NCBI GenBank assembly: GCA_038496445.1
Contig: JALMLS010000383.1
Coordinates: 1-35,015, forward strand
DNA: 35,015 bases
From: Trichosphaerium sp. ATCC 40318
Taxonomy: Eukaryota > Protista > Tubulinea
Direction of reading: 5' to 3'
Below are positions 12,572-21,688 of the stretch, piece after piece; position 1 is the first letter of the stretch, and the number at the start of each line of letters is the position of its first letter. The notes under the pieces were generated by a model. The model saw nothing but the letters and a program-made list of their open reading frames with translations. It had not been told where the DNA came from and searched no databases. Position numbers and translations under genes: made by a program.

Positions 12572-14279
12572 ATGAATTTGCTTAGTTTACCATGCGATCT
12601 ACTAGTACGTCTGGCGAAGATCTTTACGACTTCCATTCACTTTCAACGCGACTAACACACTTTTAAAGGTCGAAATAAGCAATTACAACAATCACACCTT
12701 TAAATCCTTACATTCGCTGTCAAAACTAGCAGCTGTGAAGACCCATTTTAAAGCGTACGTACTAGACTGGTTTTTAACGCTTTTGCGTTAGTTCTCATCG
12801 CAAAAAACCAAATGCGCCGCTAACTTTTTCGTTTTTTACAGAAATCTCAGTAAAAACGGTCTTTGGATACAATGGCACGATAATGGTAATTTGAAAGAGA
12901 AGTGCTACTACCAAGAGGGAATCAAGGAAGGAATGTTTTTAGCTTGGTACAAAGACGGGCAAATAAGTCACCAATGGCAAAACAAGAACGATCACGTTGC
13001 TGGAAAAGCTACAACGTGGTATTCAAATGGACAAATCCATTTAACTGGATTCGTTATTGAAGGAAAGCCTAAAGGAGAAACAAAGGTGTGGCACGAGAAT
13101 GGACAGTTACATAAAGCGTATTGTTTTAATGATAATGGAAAGATGGAAGGAGAGTTTCAAGAATGGAATAAAGACGGTGTTGATATTCGTCAGTGTTTCT
13201 ATAAAAATGGAGAAAAACAGGGTTTGTATATGGAGTGGCACAATGATGGTTCATTAAAGGAGCACAGCTATTACAAGGATAATGAGTATCATGGGGATTG
13301 TACAAAATGGAGTAGAACTAATCAAGTGATATTTAAAGGTAGTTACAAGGATGGTGAGAAAACAGGTGAACACAAGTTTTTACGTCCTGACTCTGGGGTG
13401 TTGTACAAAACACGTGTTTTTACTAAAACGCAAAGTGGTCTTAACATAGTAGAAAAGAGGAAATTTGATGAGGGTGGGCGGTTGGAGTGTTCTGCTTTCT
13501 ACAAAGAAGTCAGTGAGAGTAAAATTAAAGAAAAACAAGCAGATCGCAGATCACGCCGCCTGAATTTGGTTAGCAGCTCTATCTCAGCAGTTGGGCATGG
13601 TGAATACAAATGCTGGTACCCTAGTAATGGTCAACTGAAAGTTGAGTGTTTTTATAAAGACGGGAAGATTCAAGGTGAGAAAAAAAAGTGGCATGAGAAC
13701 GGACAACTGAAATCAGTTGTTGGATTTAAAGATGGATTAGAAGAAGGAGAATTTAAAGAATTTTATGATAATGGCCAGTTAAAGGAGAAGCACTTCTTTA
13801 AGGAAGGTATGAAGGAGGGAGAATGTACTGAGTGGGGTTACCATGGAGAATTTACAAAGTGTTGTTTTTATAAGAATGATAAGCTTGATGGAGAGTATCA
13901 GACTTGGAATGATGATGGTAAGTACTGTGTTCATTGCTTTTACAAAAATGGAGTAAAAGTTGGTAAATATGACGAATGGAATTACAAAGGAGTAATGCAA
14001 TTAGATTGCTTTTATGATGATAATGGAAAGTTAGAAGGAGAGTATAAAAAATGGAACTTTAGCGGAGTATTAGTGAAGTCTTGTTCTTATAAGAATAATA
14101 AGTTACATGGATTTTATATGATTAGAACAGTAGATGATGATTATGAAGAGGAGGTGACTTATACAAGTTATGAGAATGGAGTAGAGGTAGAATATAAGAA
14201 GCTTTATGAAGATAAACTGGCGCTTCAAAAAGAAGTTCAAGAACTTAAGGAACAACTGAAAGAAAGCCAAAACAAATAA
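12572..14279 (+). CDS. F-box-like + long MORN-variant repeat protein with 2 N-terminal introns
   Basis: Exons MNLLSLPCDLL|VEISNY..LSKLAAVKTHFKA|NLSKNGLW splice in frame to ORF 12891-14279, which has many GxxxxWxxNG repeats and a C-terminal coiled coil. Confidence 0.85.
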
Positions 14280-15524: not shown

Positions 15525-17178
15525 AAAGGAGTTGTTTTGACACTTTACAAATTTTGCACGTTCAAGCACTGTAAAGCCTAATTCCTTCATAACTTCACCT
15601 GTTATTTCATGTATGTCATTAACGCACATACAGTTCAACAGTAACCCAAGGTTTTGTGTGCGTTGTTCGTCAAAACCGGACATCGTCAATATCTTAGTCC
15701 ACTCTAATTTTTTGTAGCTTTTGGCAGATGTAATATCTATTGGTTTACCACCGATAGTACCATTTGTATAATCTATTTTTAGTTCAGCAGGAATATCTAC
15801 AGGCACATGAAGTAAGGTTTTATGTTTGATTCCGTCTATGAGAAACATGGCAACAGTGACCTCAAGAATATTCAATCTGCCACTCCCGTCTTGATCAGCA
15901 ATGGTCCATATACGCGATAACTGTGAAGTTCTAAAACGAAATTCAGGAACAAGTTGGGTTTTTTTGGCATGTGTGCTGTACCCTAGTTTGGAAAGCAAAA
16001 ATAAATCTTTGCCTTGTTGGGTATCAATGTATCCAACATCGGAAGTGTCATGTTTACGAAACAGACCTTTGTATGCTTGTATATCTGAATCGGGTATACA
16101 CCATAATTTTTTATCACTATTTTGAACTTCTGTTCTAAGTAAAGTTTGACTTTGCAAAAAATACTGAGAAATATCTTTTTTGTGTTCGTACTTAGTGCCA
16201 CTAGTTATCATACCAGCTCCATTACCTTCTGCAGTTTCCACTGTACTGGTACCAATAGTGCCATGTATATAATCAATTTTTAGTTCCTGAGGAACATCTG
16301 CAGGTATATGAGTTACAGTTTTATTTTTGATTCCATTTAGGAGAAACATGGCAACAGTGAATTCGAGAACATTCAATCTGCCTCTCCTGTTTTGATCAGC
16401 AATACTCCAAATAACTGCCAATTGTGCATTTCTTTAATAATAGGTAATAAGCACAAAAAAACGTTTTATATCACATGTTGCATACCCCATTTTGTAAGGA
16501 ACAAATAATTCTTTGCATTGTTGTCCATCAATGTATCCAACGTTAGACGTATCTAGTTTATGAAACAGAGCTTTGTATGTTTTCATCTCTGAATCTGGTA
16601 TACACCACATGTCCTTTGAATCTTCAAGGTGTTCTTGCTCTCTGAATTGGAAGAAAAGTTGGTATTTGTTCAACTGGTTTTTTTTGTGTCTCGTACTTGT
16701 TACTACTGATAGCCACACCAGCGCCAGTTGTCCCACCGATGGTACCATTTTCATAGTCGATTTTGAGTTCAGGAGGTACATCTGTAGGCACATGAGGTAA
16801 GGTTTTACATTTGATTCCATCTATTGTGCATTACATGCAGATCAAAAGATTGTACTGCAAAATGTATATAATGACGTGACATACAACAACACAACAATAA
16901 AATGTCACAACAACACAACAACAAAGTGACACAACAACACAACAAGCTGACGGCAAAATGTACAAAGTATACTTGTAACAAAAATTAACACACAGCCATT
17001 AGAAATATGTACACATTGTGTCTAAACATGTGCAGTAAAAGCTCACAATGGTTTGAAAATCAGAAAGTGTGAAAATATTACTCCTGTGTCGTCACAGACA
17101 TTAAAAAAACTGCACAGTAGGCAAGACTTATTCGCAAATCCAGAAAATAACAAAATCTAATATTTATTTGTAGACAGC

Positions 17179-18781
17179 TTACATAGTATTTCTAACTGAA
17201 AAATCACACACAGCTTGGTTACGATGACATACATAATAATAAATACAATCTTTTCTATTAAATATTTTACTAGCAGGCTGTTGGCAGTAGCAGAGTACAC
17301 CTGATTTCTTCTTCTGAAAAACTCGTTATTGAAAAAAAAAAATTATCAAATTACGCACAATGCACTTGAGTAAATGCCCCACTAATGCTGCGTCCACAAT
17401 TGTCTCATGTTCATTAGTGTACAAGTGAGTGTGAACAAGAGGTTCTGGTAACCCATACAATTGATGTGTGTTTGCGTAGTATTGTAGTGCTAGCTCATCA
17501 TCAAGTTGTTCAAGCTCTTCTTCCTTTTTTTTCTTTCTTGATTGTTGCTCCATGCGCATTTGTGCAGCGTGAGCGTGCTAAACTAGTTAGTGAAGGCTTG
17601 TAACAATTACACTACCTTTTTTTGGCGTTTTATGCGGTTTTGGAATTGTTTAACATCCTAATTGCATTTAACAAGCAAAAAAAAACACGTGATTGTTTGG
17701 TCTACAAAATTAAGCACGAAAATTGTGATAACGTTTACCTCCTCACACTTGCTAGTAAATTTGCGTTTGGAACGCTATATAATCATTAAAATTACTGTAC
17801 ATTTGGTAAAACTTACTGTTCGGACAGTGATGACATTATTGATGTCGTCTATGTCCTACTCGTATTAGTACTAACTATTAAACCAAAAAAAACCACATGG
17901 TACGTTTTTTCTTCCCAAAATGTAGCCTTTTCCGCTGAACTAATCAAATTAGCATTATCTTTGTGTGCGGTGTACCTTTGAGGATAGGAGTGCAGCCTAA
18001 AATTACATGTGAGTGAAAACTACCAAAACTCATAAACTCAAACGTACGTCTTTTTTTTCTGGCTTGTCTGGTGTGTGGATTGATTTTTCTTGTTCAAGGT
18101 TTGAAAACAAGTTTGGAGAGTAAACTAATCAGCGTTACACCCATCTTGAAAATTACATACTTGCTTGTTTGACCTCACGTTCAGGTGTAGACAAAAGGTA
18201 ATTGTATTTTGCTAACTCCTCTAAAGTGAAATTAAAACGCAGGTAGGTTACACAAAGACATACTAGGTGGACTGTTTTTCCACTGTTTTTGTGATGCCAA
18301 GTTTTTTAATTCTTCCAGCGCACTATTATATTGCTCCATTTGCTTCAAACGTGCTTGAATGTTGCTAGAACCCAGGGACGCTCTGATTTTTGCTTCATCC
18401 ACCTGACGTTTACTTTTAATGCTATTTTGTAGCTTCGTAGCCTATAACATTGAGATGCAAACAAAAAACTCTCTTGTACCAGCTGCTTCAACTGAATGTT
18501 GGTCCTCAGGTCTTTACCATGGCCGTCTGTGTGAGGAATGTTATTTCAAATGTAGCACAAATAAACGTACAGTGGCTTTGTTTACACCACGTTTTGCTTA
18601 GGCAAATTACATCTTCATTATTTACTTAAGGACACCTGTGTTGTCTACCATTCCGTTTGAACCTCATATCACTCTTAACAAGATGACAAATGGTACATAT
18701 ATGGCCTCTATTATTGCGCAATGGTATAGGATCAACTGGATAACCTGCTGGTCTAGGTGGATCAGGAGGTACGTGTGTCAT
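17179..18781 (-). CDS. Transposon second gene: Cys/His finger, coiled coil, SHP-box-like motif and GRF-like zinc finger (about 12 exons)
   Basis: Phase-consistent GT..AG chain: MTHVPPDPP..HICTICH..HRCP*..CLSKTWCKQSH|YGH..|..|FSGKGYILGRKN|..|LCYCQQPASKIFNRKDCIYYYVCHRNQAVCDFSV. One in-frame TAA at 18626-18628, which a weak 39-nt intron could remove. Confidence 0.65.
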
Positions 18782-18827
18782 TGTTTAATAAACTAAATGT
18801 ATTTATTTTTCCATCACAAAATCACAT

Positions 18828-19991
18828 ATGGCAACAGAAAAAGCTACTTATATGTTAGGTTTGGCTGCCGCAGTAGGTGGTCAAAGCTTTGCTAGAAAGC
18901 TTTTTGGAGCATCTGCTGGAAAGACAAAATACTGGCTCACAAAATTTGTAGATCCCACCTTTCATAGCAACAAAAATGGGGGGCTTCGCACAACAAAGTT
19001 TACTCCAGGTAGATTTTTTTTTTGAGTTTAGTTAATTGTTGTTTAGAGCAAGAAAAAAATGTGTGGGATGTTGTACTTTTTTTACACAGTGTGGACCCCC
19101 AACTGACGTTGATTGAGTATGCCACGGTAATCAACGAATTAATTGTGCCATATAAAATCTCTAAAGCATGGATATCACGGAGATTTATTGCTATGGGGTG
19201 GACTTGGAAAGTATGAACATATAAATTTTTTGATATTTTTTTATTTATTTTTTTGCAGGTTGTGGAGCACAAGCAAATTCAAAAATACACTCCAGAAAAT
19301 ATGTTACACTATAACAGGTTTCTTTCTTTTGTATTGTCAGTGTCTCCATCACAGTTAAAGTTTGCAGACGAGACACACTTTGTTTCTAAAAGTTTGTATT
19401 TTTTTTTTTAATTTTTTTTTTTCACTTTTTTTTTAGGCAACTATCGAAAATATGGCCGAGGCCCTTGTGGCCATAAAGTAGTAGTTATTAATGAACCTAT
19501 TCTAAGTAAGTCCGCTAACCTAACTATATTGACGTCACTTACTGCAGATGTACGTTTTTATCCCAACAATCGTTTTTTCTCAAATTTCTATTAAAAAAAT
19601 TATATAGGTTCCAGTGCTTGGTATGTATCATAAACACAAGAACACACAGCATGATTGGGCGTCTTTTGTTTACTATGCACTAAAAAATGATTATTTGGTG
19701 GCTGGAGATATTTTGGTATGTGATAATGCCCCTATTCACTGTGCCGACAAAGTACTAGTACTAGTAACAGAGGCTTGTGAATCAAAAAATGTGAAATTAT
19801 TATTACTACCAACTTATTCACTGGAGCTAAACCCTTGTGAACTTGTATTCGGAACAGTAAAAAATCACATCCGTTATTACAGAGGAAAAGAGCCTTTAGA
19901 TGTAGAAGTAATGATGGCATTGTCAAGAATTTCAAAAACAAAACTTAAAAACTTTTATAAAAAATGTCGTGGTGGTGTAGAGCTTGAATAA
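18828..19991 (+). CDS. IS630/Tc1-like DDE transposase, 5 exons, D-D38-E
   Basis: Spliced ORF is open: HTH-like region, KFADETHF, ILVCDNAPIH and LPTYSLELNPCELVFGTVK. 38 residues lie between the second D and the E. Confidence 0.9.
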
Positions 19992-21688
19992 ATTTTGGCC
20001 TGTACTTATTAAAGTAACTTCATTAAACAGCAAACTTGTTCTTTTTATTGAGTACTATTAATAGATCTTGCCATACTGTGCACTTGTCTACTGTACATTT
20101 TGCCGTCAGCTTGTTGTGTTGTTGTGTCACTTTGTTGTTGTGTTGTTGTGACATTTTATTGTTGTGTTGTTGTATGTCACGTCATTATATACATTTTGCA
20201 GTACAATCTTTTGATTTGCATGTAACGCACAATATGAGAAACATGGCAACAGTGAATTCAAGAATATTCAATCTGCCACTCTCATCTTGATCAACAATGC
20301 CCCATATCATTGCCAAGTCCATTTTACTATAATGTAACGGAAGAAATTAATACACATGACACTGGTAGAGTTGACATTGTTATCATACTGCAAGTTGTAT
20401 TGCATAAACAGCTGTTTACATCGTTTTCCTGAAATGTAACCATTGTTGTCACTATCTTCTTTATAGAATAGTGTTTGAAACTCTTGCTGCTTTGAATCCG
20501 GAATTCTCCACATGTGCTCTATTTTTGCAAATGAGAATTAAAATGATAATATACATTGTATAATATTAGTGTTTGATTTCCAAGAAACTTCTGGTGTGTA
20601 GTTGTAATCAACAGAAATGTCTTTTACCTGAACGCTTGTTTGAAAGTATACGCAGGTCAAATACCTTTGAATGGATTGAATTATTACTGTAAGAGCAGAT
20701 TACAGTATAACTGGCAGAAATAAAGCTCTTTGAAGCGATTTCTTTTTGAATACCTCAAACAGGCGTTTTGTTCAATATTATTACCCGCACACTTGTGCTG
20801 GTGAAATGTGCCACGAAGTTGTGATACTCAAATTGTAACTGAAGTAAAGTGAAGAAATTAGTGGTACCAAATAAATGTCAATAGTTTTCTCCATCAAAAA
20901 AAAAAAAAAAAGACTCGTAAAGCAATAATGCGAACATAACCGATAGCAGTCACATCAGTGATTTATTTTACACAGCCTACCACCAGTATTTTTAAAGCAA
21001 TTATTAACTTACAGTCCCACGAGCAGGGAAGAGATTTTCTACTGAATCTGAATAACTCTGTGTTATTTGAACGGCTTGAGTTAAAAACATTAAGTACTGA
21101 AACCAAGACAGTGGCATGGTTTCGTTAGAAAGATAATAAGAATCGTTCAACGGCTTACAAGTGGTCACTAGTGGTATACAATGTCCATGCAAAGAGGCTC
21201 ACAACTAACACGTTAGTACTCAGTTATCATAACATAACCAGAAGGTAATTTACATAAGGTTACACGCAATAGTATGTAATTATTAGCAGAAAATAAGTGT
21301 GGTTCCTTTTCGCTAAATTTTTTTACAGCAACATGTTGTGAGACAGCTATGCATGATCTCAAACACCTTTTTCACTCAGTTTTCGAACAGTTTTGTTACC
21401 TTTCTGAACCGTCATTATATGGTAGATTCTGGGAGAAGTACATAAAGGCCGCATAGTTGAGTACATTTGAAAAACAACCAAAAGATCCTCAGTGAGGACA
21501 CTGTAATGCTCTTTGTTTGTTCAAATGTGTTTTCTAGGCAACACCTATGGTAACGAGTAAGGTCTATATTCGCCGATGCACGCACCTTGTAGATGCTCGT
21601 AGATTTGTTCTTTTTTTTGATTTTTTACATACAATGAAAAAAGGTGATTGACGGTGCCAATGTAAGTTTTATTATTTGTTTTGATTGT

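Follow-up and report, generated by a model that had tools for sequence, protein, structure and literature searches.

The SHP box (binding site 1) is a short motif by which Ufd1, p47/Shp1, SPRTN/DVC1, Derlin-1 and ASPL bind the segregase Cdc48/p97. Its core is F-x-G-x-G-x-x-L, as a rule with a G after it. True SHP boxes usually lie in low-complexity linkers, and the box of SPRTN is, as we take it, FSGKGYVLG. The full motif of Ufd1 is 225-FRAFSGSGNRL-235, in which the substitutions F225A, F228A and L235A each abolish binding; the three residues are conserved in Ufd1, p47 and DVC1, and the free Ufd1 SHP peptide is a weak ligand with a Kd of only ~221 uM (PMC5042407). The SHP mutant of mouse SPRTN/DVC1, F254A/L261A, has the same F-to-L spacing (PMC4269170).

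That a transposon peptide can draw an AAA+ unfoldase of the host to a highly stable transposition complex has been proven experimentally in bacteria, where the C-terminal tag of the MuA transposase is recognized by ClpX. Bacterial ClpX also raises CAST integration in human cells ~100-fold (PMC10055298).

Elements of the Tc1/mariner/IS630 superfamily are characterized by a DDE_3 transposase domain, terminal inverted repeats and TA flanks. They normally consist of a single gene. In PIF/Harbinger elements the transposase is accompanied by a Myb-like ORF2 protein, which is conserved across related elements and on which nuclear import and the binding of the element's ends depend.

The window analysed here, a stretch of 35,015 nt from Trichosphaerium sp. 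ATCC 40318, holds a complete Tc1/IS630-like transposon with two divergent genes, one for the transposase and one, designated ORF2, for an accessory protein (Table 1). A whole-genome DNA search revealed three full copies in the 70-Mb assembly, that of the window (contig C326) and those on C522 and C120, with 99 % identity. The terminal inverted repeats are 143 nt long and 99 % complementary, and TA is present at both ends of all three copies, in agreement with the terminal repeats and TA target duplication of Tc1/mariner/IS630 elements. The last exon of the transposase gene matches Pfam DDE_3 (PF13358) at 4.5e-11, the same domain was found in all transposase homologues at 37-45 % identity, and the spliced model with its four introns is open in all copies. 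The element thus shares the domain, the terminal repeats and the TA flanks with the superfamily and differs from it in the 143-nt length of the repeats, the four transposase introns and the divergent 10-exon accessory gene. Three families of this genome, the present one included, depart from the single-gene organization, each having kept a divergently oriented second gene. Between the ORF2 start codon and that of the transposase gene lie only 46 bp (18782-18827), and the two genes must, with this layout, have either a very compact bidirectional promoter or overlapping 5' ends.

Table 1. Features of the transposon in the window. ORF2 exons are numbered in the direction of transcription.
Feature	Position	Strand	Basis or remark
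Complete Tc1/IS630-like transposon copy, two divergent genes	16822..20234	.	3413 bp including one flanking TA per side
Left terminal inverted repeat	16822..16964	.	Repeat comparison
Right terminal inverted repeat	20092..20234	.	Repeat comparison
Transposase gene, 324 aa, 5 exons (18828-19008, 19047-19210, 19259-19391, 19437-19549, 19608-19991)	18828..19991	+	DDE_3, spliced model
ORF2 exon 1, 88 codons, conserved Cys/His module	18518..18781	-	Open in C522 and C120
ORF2 exon 2, coiled-coil-like	18264..18441	-	GT-AG model; weak similarity to family-2 ORF2 (...EELKNLAS / EQLRKLAS)
ORF2 exon 3	18161..18220	-	GT-AG model
ORF2 exon 4	18048..18088	-	Model; 2 substitutions vs MITE copies, both synonymous
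ORF2 exon 5, 21 nt, AALLSSK	17976..17996	-	Model; 3 substitutions vs MITE copies, all synonymous
ORF2 exon 6, 36 nt, FSGKGYILGRKN, SHP-core-like motif	17904..17939	-	Model; TTC>TTT in MITE copies synonymous only in this frame
ORF2 exon 7	17817..17855	-	Model only
ORF2 exon 8, RSKRKF..., basic, NLS-like	17739..17774	-	Model only
ORF2 exon 9, ...IKRQKK, basic	17616..17657	-	Model; in 168 of 168 enumerated paths
ORF2 exon 10 with stop codon	17326..17577	-	83-codon open frame
Segment kept in two ~650-bp MITE-like deletion derivatives (C488, C178)	17922..18109	.	93 % identity

The element has inserted into a coding exon of a host gene whose product contains repeats of an EH-type domain (minus strand; TA at 16822-16823 and 20233-20234; flanks 16600-16821 and 20235-20420). 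In silico excision of the element together with one TA made the EH-domain reading frame continuous again, and the restored frame, ...NILEFTVAMFLIDGIKCKTLPHVPTDVPPELKIDYENGTIGG..., agrees with the neighbouring EH-type repeats of the same gene. Since the transposon sits inside a coding exon whose frame is restored on its removal, this copy of the host EH-domain gene is disrupted here. Elsewhere in the window an intron-less open frame of 462 aa with MORN-like repeats (...GxxxGxxxxWxxNGQ...) was noted on the plus strand at 12891-14279, beside intron-rich genes.

The window copy carries 22 private differences with respect to C522 and C120 (16830-20216), 17 of which are C>T or G>A changes, 10 of these at CpG. 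The bias towards CpG suggests cytosine methylation and deamination of a silenced copy. A private A instead of G at 18628 converts ORF2 codon 52 from CAA to TAA (18626-18628), upstream of the motif discussed below, and this TAA was recovered independently in a profile search of the genome. There are also two private non-synonymous changes in ORF2 exon 7, and the transposase of the window copy has P269L within its YSPELNP motif. With the stop at codon 52 and the CpG decay the window copy is evidently dead or decaying, so expression of the motif would be confined to C522 and C120.

ORF2 was rebuilt on the minus strand, divergently from the transposase gene, as 10 exons encoding 322 aa and separated by GT-AG introns of 36-81 nt. 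The donors are GTA in 9/9 introns, as in the six introns of host Cdc48 that were read, and in C522 and C120 the model can be read through from the ATG to the terminal stop. The acceptor of exon 4 could also lie at 18124, though less probably, and 18089-18109 diverges in the manner of an intron. The only genomic matches to the sequence of exon 10 are the three copies. The protein would consist of four parts: an N-terminal Cys/His module of zinc-binding type, a coiled-coil-like segment, a K/R-rich linker and a C-terminal domain. The linker, presumably disordered, appears to be assembled from six micro-exons with clusters resembling nuclear localization signals, and RSKRK, KRQKK and SRKKKK lie beside the motif.

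A transposase search of the genome identified two further families: family 2 (45 % identity), located on C23, and family 3 (42 % identity), which is represented on C374 and C537 and, in truncated form, on C165. In both families a divergent gene lies upstream of the transposase gene, and its first open frame has the pattern G-x2-C-x2-C-H...H-x-C-P...C...C found in ORF2 exon 1. Nine residues are invariant across the three ORF2 families (G26, C29, C32, H33, H48, C50, P51, C60 and C66), and a profile search added a degenerate family-2 copy on C21. The family-3 copies (L052:3777-6985 on C374 and L053:3470-6677 on C537) are two-gene DDE_3 elements of 3.2 kb with ~200-nt repeats. The family-2 ORF2 has a sequence PPKKRKA, similar to a nuclear localization signal. 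The C23 copy of this family (L050:6645-8480) has no detectable terminal repeats, and the C21 copy (L061:6011-6857) is a degenerate, 85 %-identical fragment with stops and a 1-kb deletion.

Besides the C-x2-C-H...H-x-C-P module, the family-3 ORF2 contains a C-terminal GRF zinc finger (PF06839, 6.9e-7), which fits a nucleic-acid-binding role. Pfam searches with ORF2 exons 1, 2 and 10 gave nothing significant. An exhaustive phmmer search of 1.84 billion representatives with exon 1 found no relatives outside this genome beyond one match at 20 % identity to a bacterial protein of 2507 aa with DUF7507/DUF11 repeats, which was rejected as spurious. Word-index protein searches gave no matches either for exon 10 or for the exon-1 alignment of the three families. 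Against the ESM Atlas exon 1 reached no more than an uninformative 0.76, and AlphaFold2 modelled this exon from the 3-row alignment with a pLDDT of 47, too low to be of use.

The earlier assignment of the micro-exon to a transposon accessory gene was upheld, in that the 10-exon gene is real and its Cys/His module is kept in the ORF2s of two other families. By these comparisons ORF2 is a genuine, lineage-restricted accessory gene, its Cys/His module is conserved and unclassified, and the two-gene layout is unusual for the Tc1/IS630 superfamily. PIF/Harbinger elements likewise have a second DNA-binding-type protein beside the transposase, but the present element combines a DDE_3 transposase and TA duplication with an ORF2 that contains no Myb/SANT domain and has instead the unclassified module, joined by the GRF finger in family 3. 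Most likely the ORF2 product is a nuclear cofactor that binds DNA or the transposase, a role of the kind played by the accessory genes of other DNA transposons with two genes.

The micro-exon at 17939-17904 of the minus strand reads TTCAGCGGAAAAGGCTACATTTTGGGAAGAAAAAAC, translated as FSGKGYILGRKN, as the first-pass annotation had stated. Its 5' flank is ...gctaatttgattAG (...gattAG) and its 3' flank GTaccatg, which gives AG/GT borders, and the exon is identical in C326, C522 and C120. The longest unspliced frame containing the motif extends over 22 aa. The annotation had also considered the phase to be fixed by the neighbouring exons, which proved too strong: in-frame GTA...AG splice paths from exon 3 to exon 10 number 168, and only 36 of them hold FSGKGYILG. 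Dinucleotide shuffles of the 583-nt exon 3-10 interval permit an in-frame GT-AG path in 84 % of cases (14 % with GTA donors), so the threading of an open frame is weak evidence when taken alone. When a branch point (YTRAY) was strictly required of each path, even the proposed ORF2 model dropped out, and this requirement was given up. The ease of threading and the 132 real paths that bypass the motif are consistent with another view, that the motif is a threading artefact and is not translated, the middle of ORF2 being spliced otherwise, by skipping of exon 6 or through a different acceptor, or the transcript having an earlier end. Exons 5-9 are moreover all multiples of 3 nt, each of which could be skipped without a break of the frame, and an AG five bases inside the exon (17935-17936) offers an alternative acceptor.

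The substitutions accumulated in two MITE-like deletion derivatives (C488:15336-15994 and C178:44285-44936) argue against such an artefact and support the frame that the neighbouring exons do not fix. The derivatives consist of the terminal repeats and only the one internal segment listed in Table 1, which takes in exons 4 and 5 together with the first 18 nt of exon 6. At 93 % identity this inner piece resembles the autonomous element more closely than the terminal repeats do (76-91 %). All six exonic substitutions within exons 4-6 (ACA>ACG, GAC>GAT, CTC>CTT, CTA>TTA, TCA>TCG and TTC>TTT) are synonymous in the proposed frame. The two alternative frames reach 1/6 and 0/6, and two stops arise in the third frame. 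With 35 % of possible transitions being synonymous, P is ~0.002 for the six changes and ~0.005 for the five that are common to both MITE copies. This pattern argues for an evolution of exons 4-6 as coding sequence in precisely these frames and shows the exon 6 frame to be under purifying selection. The frame SAEKATFWEEK, named earlier as an alternative to FSGKGY..., is disfavoured, since TCA>TTA would there replace Ser with Leu. As the alternative frames take non-synonymous or stop changes and the uniform GTA donors match those of host genes, it seems improbable that the motif is left untranslated. Exon 6 and its frame are very probably real.

The peptide FSGKGYILG fits F-x-G-x-G-x-x-L-G at 5/5 fixed positions, the final Gly included, and on this point the initial observation was accurate. 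To a perfect core consensus in a supported coding frame is added the location of the motif in a basic, low-complexity linker, so that ORF2 resembles the known SHP adaptors in the core, in the linker and in the conserved pocket of the partner. These likenesses speak for a working SHP box that would dock ORF2 on the Nc lobe of the N domain of host Cdc48/p97. Such docking would bring the segregase to the transposon DNA or the transposase, where it could strip the post-transposition complex, turn over the transposase or remove chromatin proteins. Unfoldases do limit transposition elsewhere, as in the case of MuA and ClpX or of CAST and ClpX (PMC10055298).

The host itself is equipped for this interaction. 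It has one Cdc48 gene (CDC48_N at 3.8e-23), whose N domain is divided by an intron and whose segments KRVHVLP...GNLF...PYFL...VVE...CIVAPDTVIH were aligned to p97 residues 43-149 and 154-202. The residues R113, H115, L117, F131, F139, L140, V166, V176, I182 and H183, listed as contacts of the Ufd1 SHP box (PMC5042407), are all kept, and the SHP-binding pocket of host Cdc48 is, by this alignment, fully conserved. The motif is also in use among host adaptors: a p47-like gene has the box FDGTGYRLG, with G-Y-x-L-G in common with the ORF2 motif, and two Ufd1-like genes have FNGSGQRIS with FGGKGRTLV and FTGDGKALA with FGGTGHTLK. Other matches in the genome that look like true SHP boxes were FSGTGQKLG (C4:466224-466249), FSGPGDRLG (C75:144665-144690), FTGVGSKLG (C99:152637-152662) and FKGKGSKLG (C19:76669-76694), and these loci may encode further Cdc48 adaptors of the host.

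A host gene with an SHP box, whether SPRTN-like, p47-like or Ufd1-like, could in principle also have been the source of exon 6. Transposons sometimes capture host exons, and the peptide is nearly identical to the SPRTN box as we take the latter to be. However, the whole-genome DNA search with the element returned only its own copies and derivatives, the FxGKGxxLG pattern gave no host copy of the exon sequence, the stretches examined of the host SprT-like loci contain no F.G.G..[LIVM], and the SHP box of the host p47-like gene differs at the DNA level. As no host homologue of the exon was found in the genome searches, capture from the host was rejected, its likelihood being negligible.

Several results count against a working SHP box. 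The motif is no commoner than chance: a DNA pattern for F.G.G..[L/F]G had 117 matches in the 70-Mb genome, whose count for the reversed control pattern was 135. When position 4 was restricted to Lys (FxGKGxxLG) there were 6 matches, 3 of them being the transposon copies, versus 3 in the control. A shuffled window contains ~0.015 motif matches, so a scan of more than 1000 windows will meet chance matches.

Conservation among ORF2 homologues, which the first-pass annotation had proposed as a check, was not borne out, as the motif is missing from family 2, family 3 and the degenerate copy on C21. The ORF2 regions of family 2 (L050) and family 3 (L052) contain neither half of the motif, F.G.G or G.G..[LIVM]G, in any of their forward frames, and no [FYW].G.G..[LIVMF] was found inside the ORF2-homologous blocks of C21 (L061), the nearest match, FAGAGLAFN, lying ~750 nt beyond them. 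Only the close relative from which the MITE copies stem retains FSGKGY. Because short linear motifs are gained and lost quickly, absence from families related at 42-45 % is weak evidence. In our judgement FSGKGYILG is a lineage-specific short linear motif of the linker, and its likeness to the SHP core would sooner be due to chance, or at most provide a weak docking site, than belong to a conserved transposition mechanism.

The surroundings of the motif also differ from those in the described adaptors. The residue at position -3 to the core Phe, which is aromatic in Ufd1 (Phe225) and is required for binding there (PMC5042407), is Ser in ORF2 (...AALLSSK|FSGKGYILG). The box of the host p47-like protein, EKTKFDGTGYRLG, also has no hydrophobic residue at this position, so this feature is not universal. 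ORF2 has a single motif: no second Cdc48-binding module was evident in it, whether UBX, UBXL or VIM. Where exons 9 and 10 join, a VIM-like sequence, RQKKHAHAAQMR, misses R-x5-A-A-x2-R by one; it was treated as a chance match. Moreover, ORF2, the putative adaptor, is a transposon protein with no relatives found outside the genome, and a literature search found no paper tying a eukaryotic transposase to Cdc48/p97.

Taken as a whole, the 117 matches versus 135, the paralogues that have no motif, the Ser at -3 and the weakness of isolated SHP peptides make a functional SHP box rather unlikely, though the peptide is a credible candidate for a Cdc48 docking site. The explanation judged best, which we favour tentatively, is that the sequence is a genuine coding micro-exon, the sixth of ten in ORF2, whose likeness to the SHP core would be fortuitous or would provide at best a weak docking site. 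The complete core, the likeness to the p47-like box, the basic low-complexity linker and the intact host pocket count against a purely fortuitous match. With the micro-exon read in this way, ORF2 would presumably act as a cofactor with no dependence on Cdc48.

The first-pass annotation had gone further and proposed a transposon-encoded DNA-binding adaptor that could recruit the segregase to take apart the post-integration complex or to remove silencing factors. In the fullest form of this reading, the Cys/His module would bind the transposon DNA or the transposase and the SHP box would recruit the segregase for disassembly of the post-transposition complex. The proposed logic is that of the ClpX tag of MuA, in which a peptide encoded by the transposon brings an AAA+ unfoldase of the host to a highly stable transposition complex. 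The bacterial tag, however, is part of the transposase itself and has been verified by experiment, whereas in ORF2 a candidate motif is present on a separate accessory protein and the partner would be Cdc48/p97. The disassembly role comes from the analogy with MuA-ClpX and CAST-ClpX and not from this sequence, and an adaptor with this role is in our judgement decidedly improbable.

To our knowledge, it is largely unexplained how the cut-and-paste transposases of eukaryotes are cleared from product complexes of such high stability. ClpX, the bacterial answer to this problem, limits engineered transposition in human cells (PMC10055298). If the docking proved true, a transposon with its own p97/Cdc48 docking site would provide a directly testable answer, a eukaryotic counterpart of MuA-ClpX and possibly a tool. 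Even without docking, the locus represents a two-gene Tc1/IS630-like family whose accessory protein has a conserved, unclassified Cys/His module.
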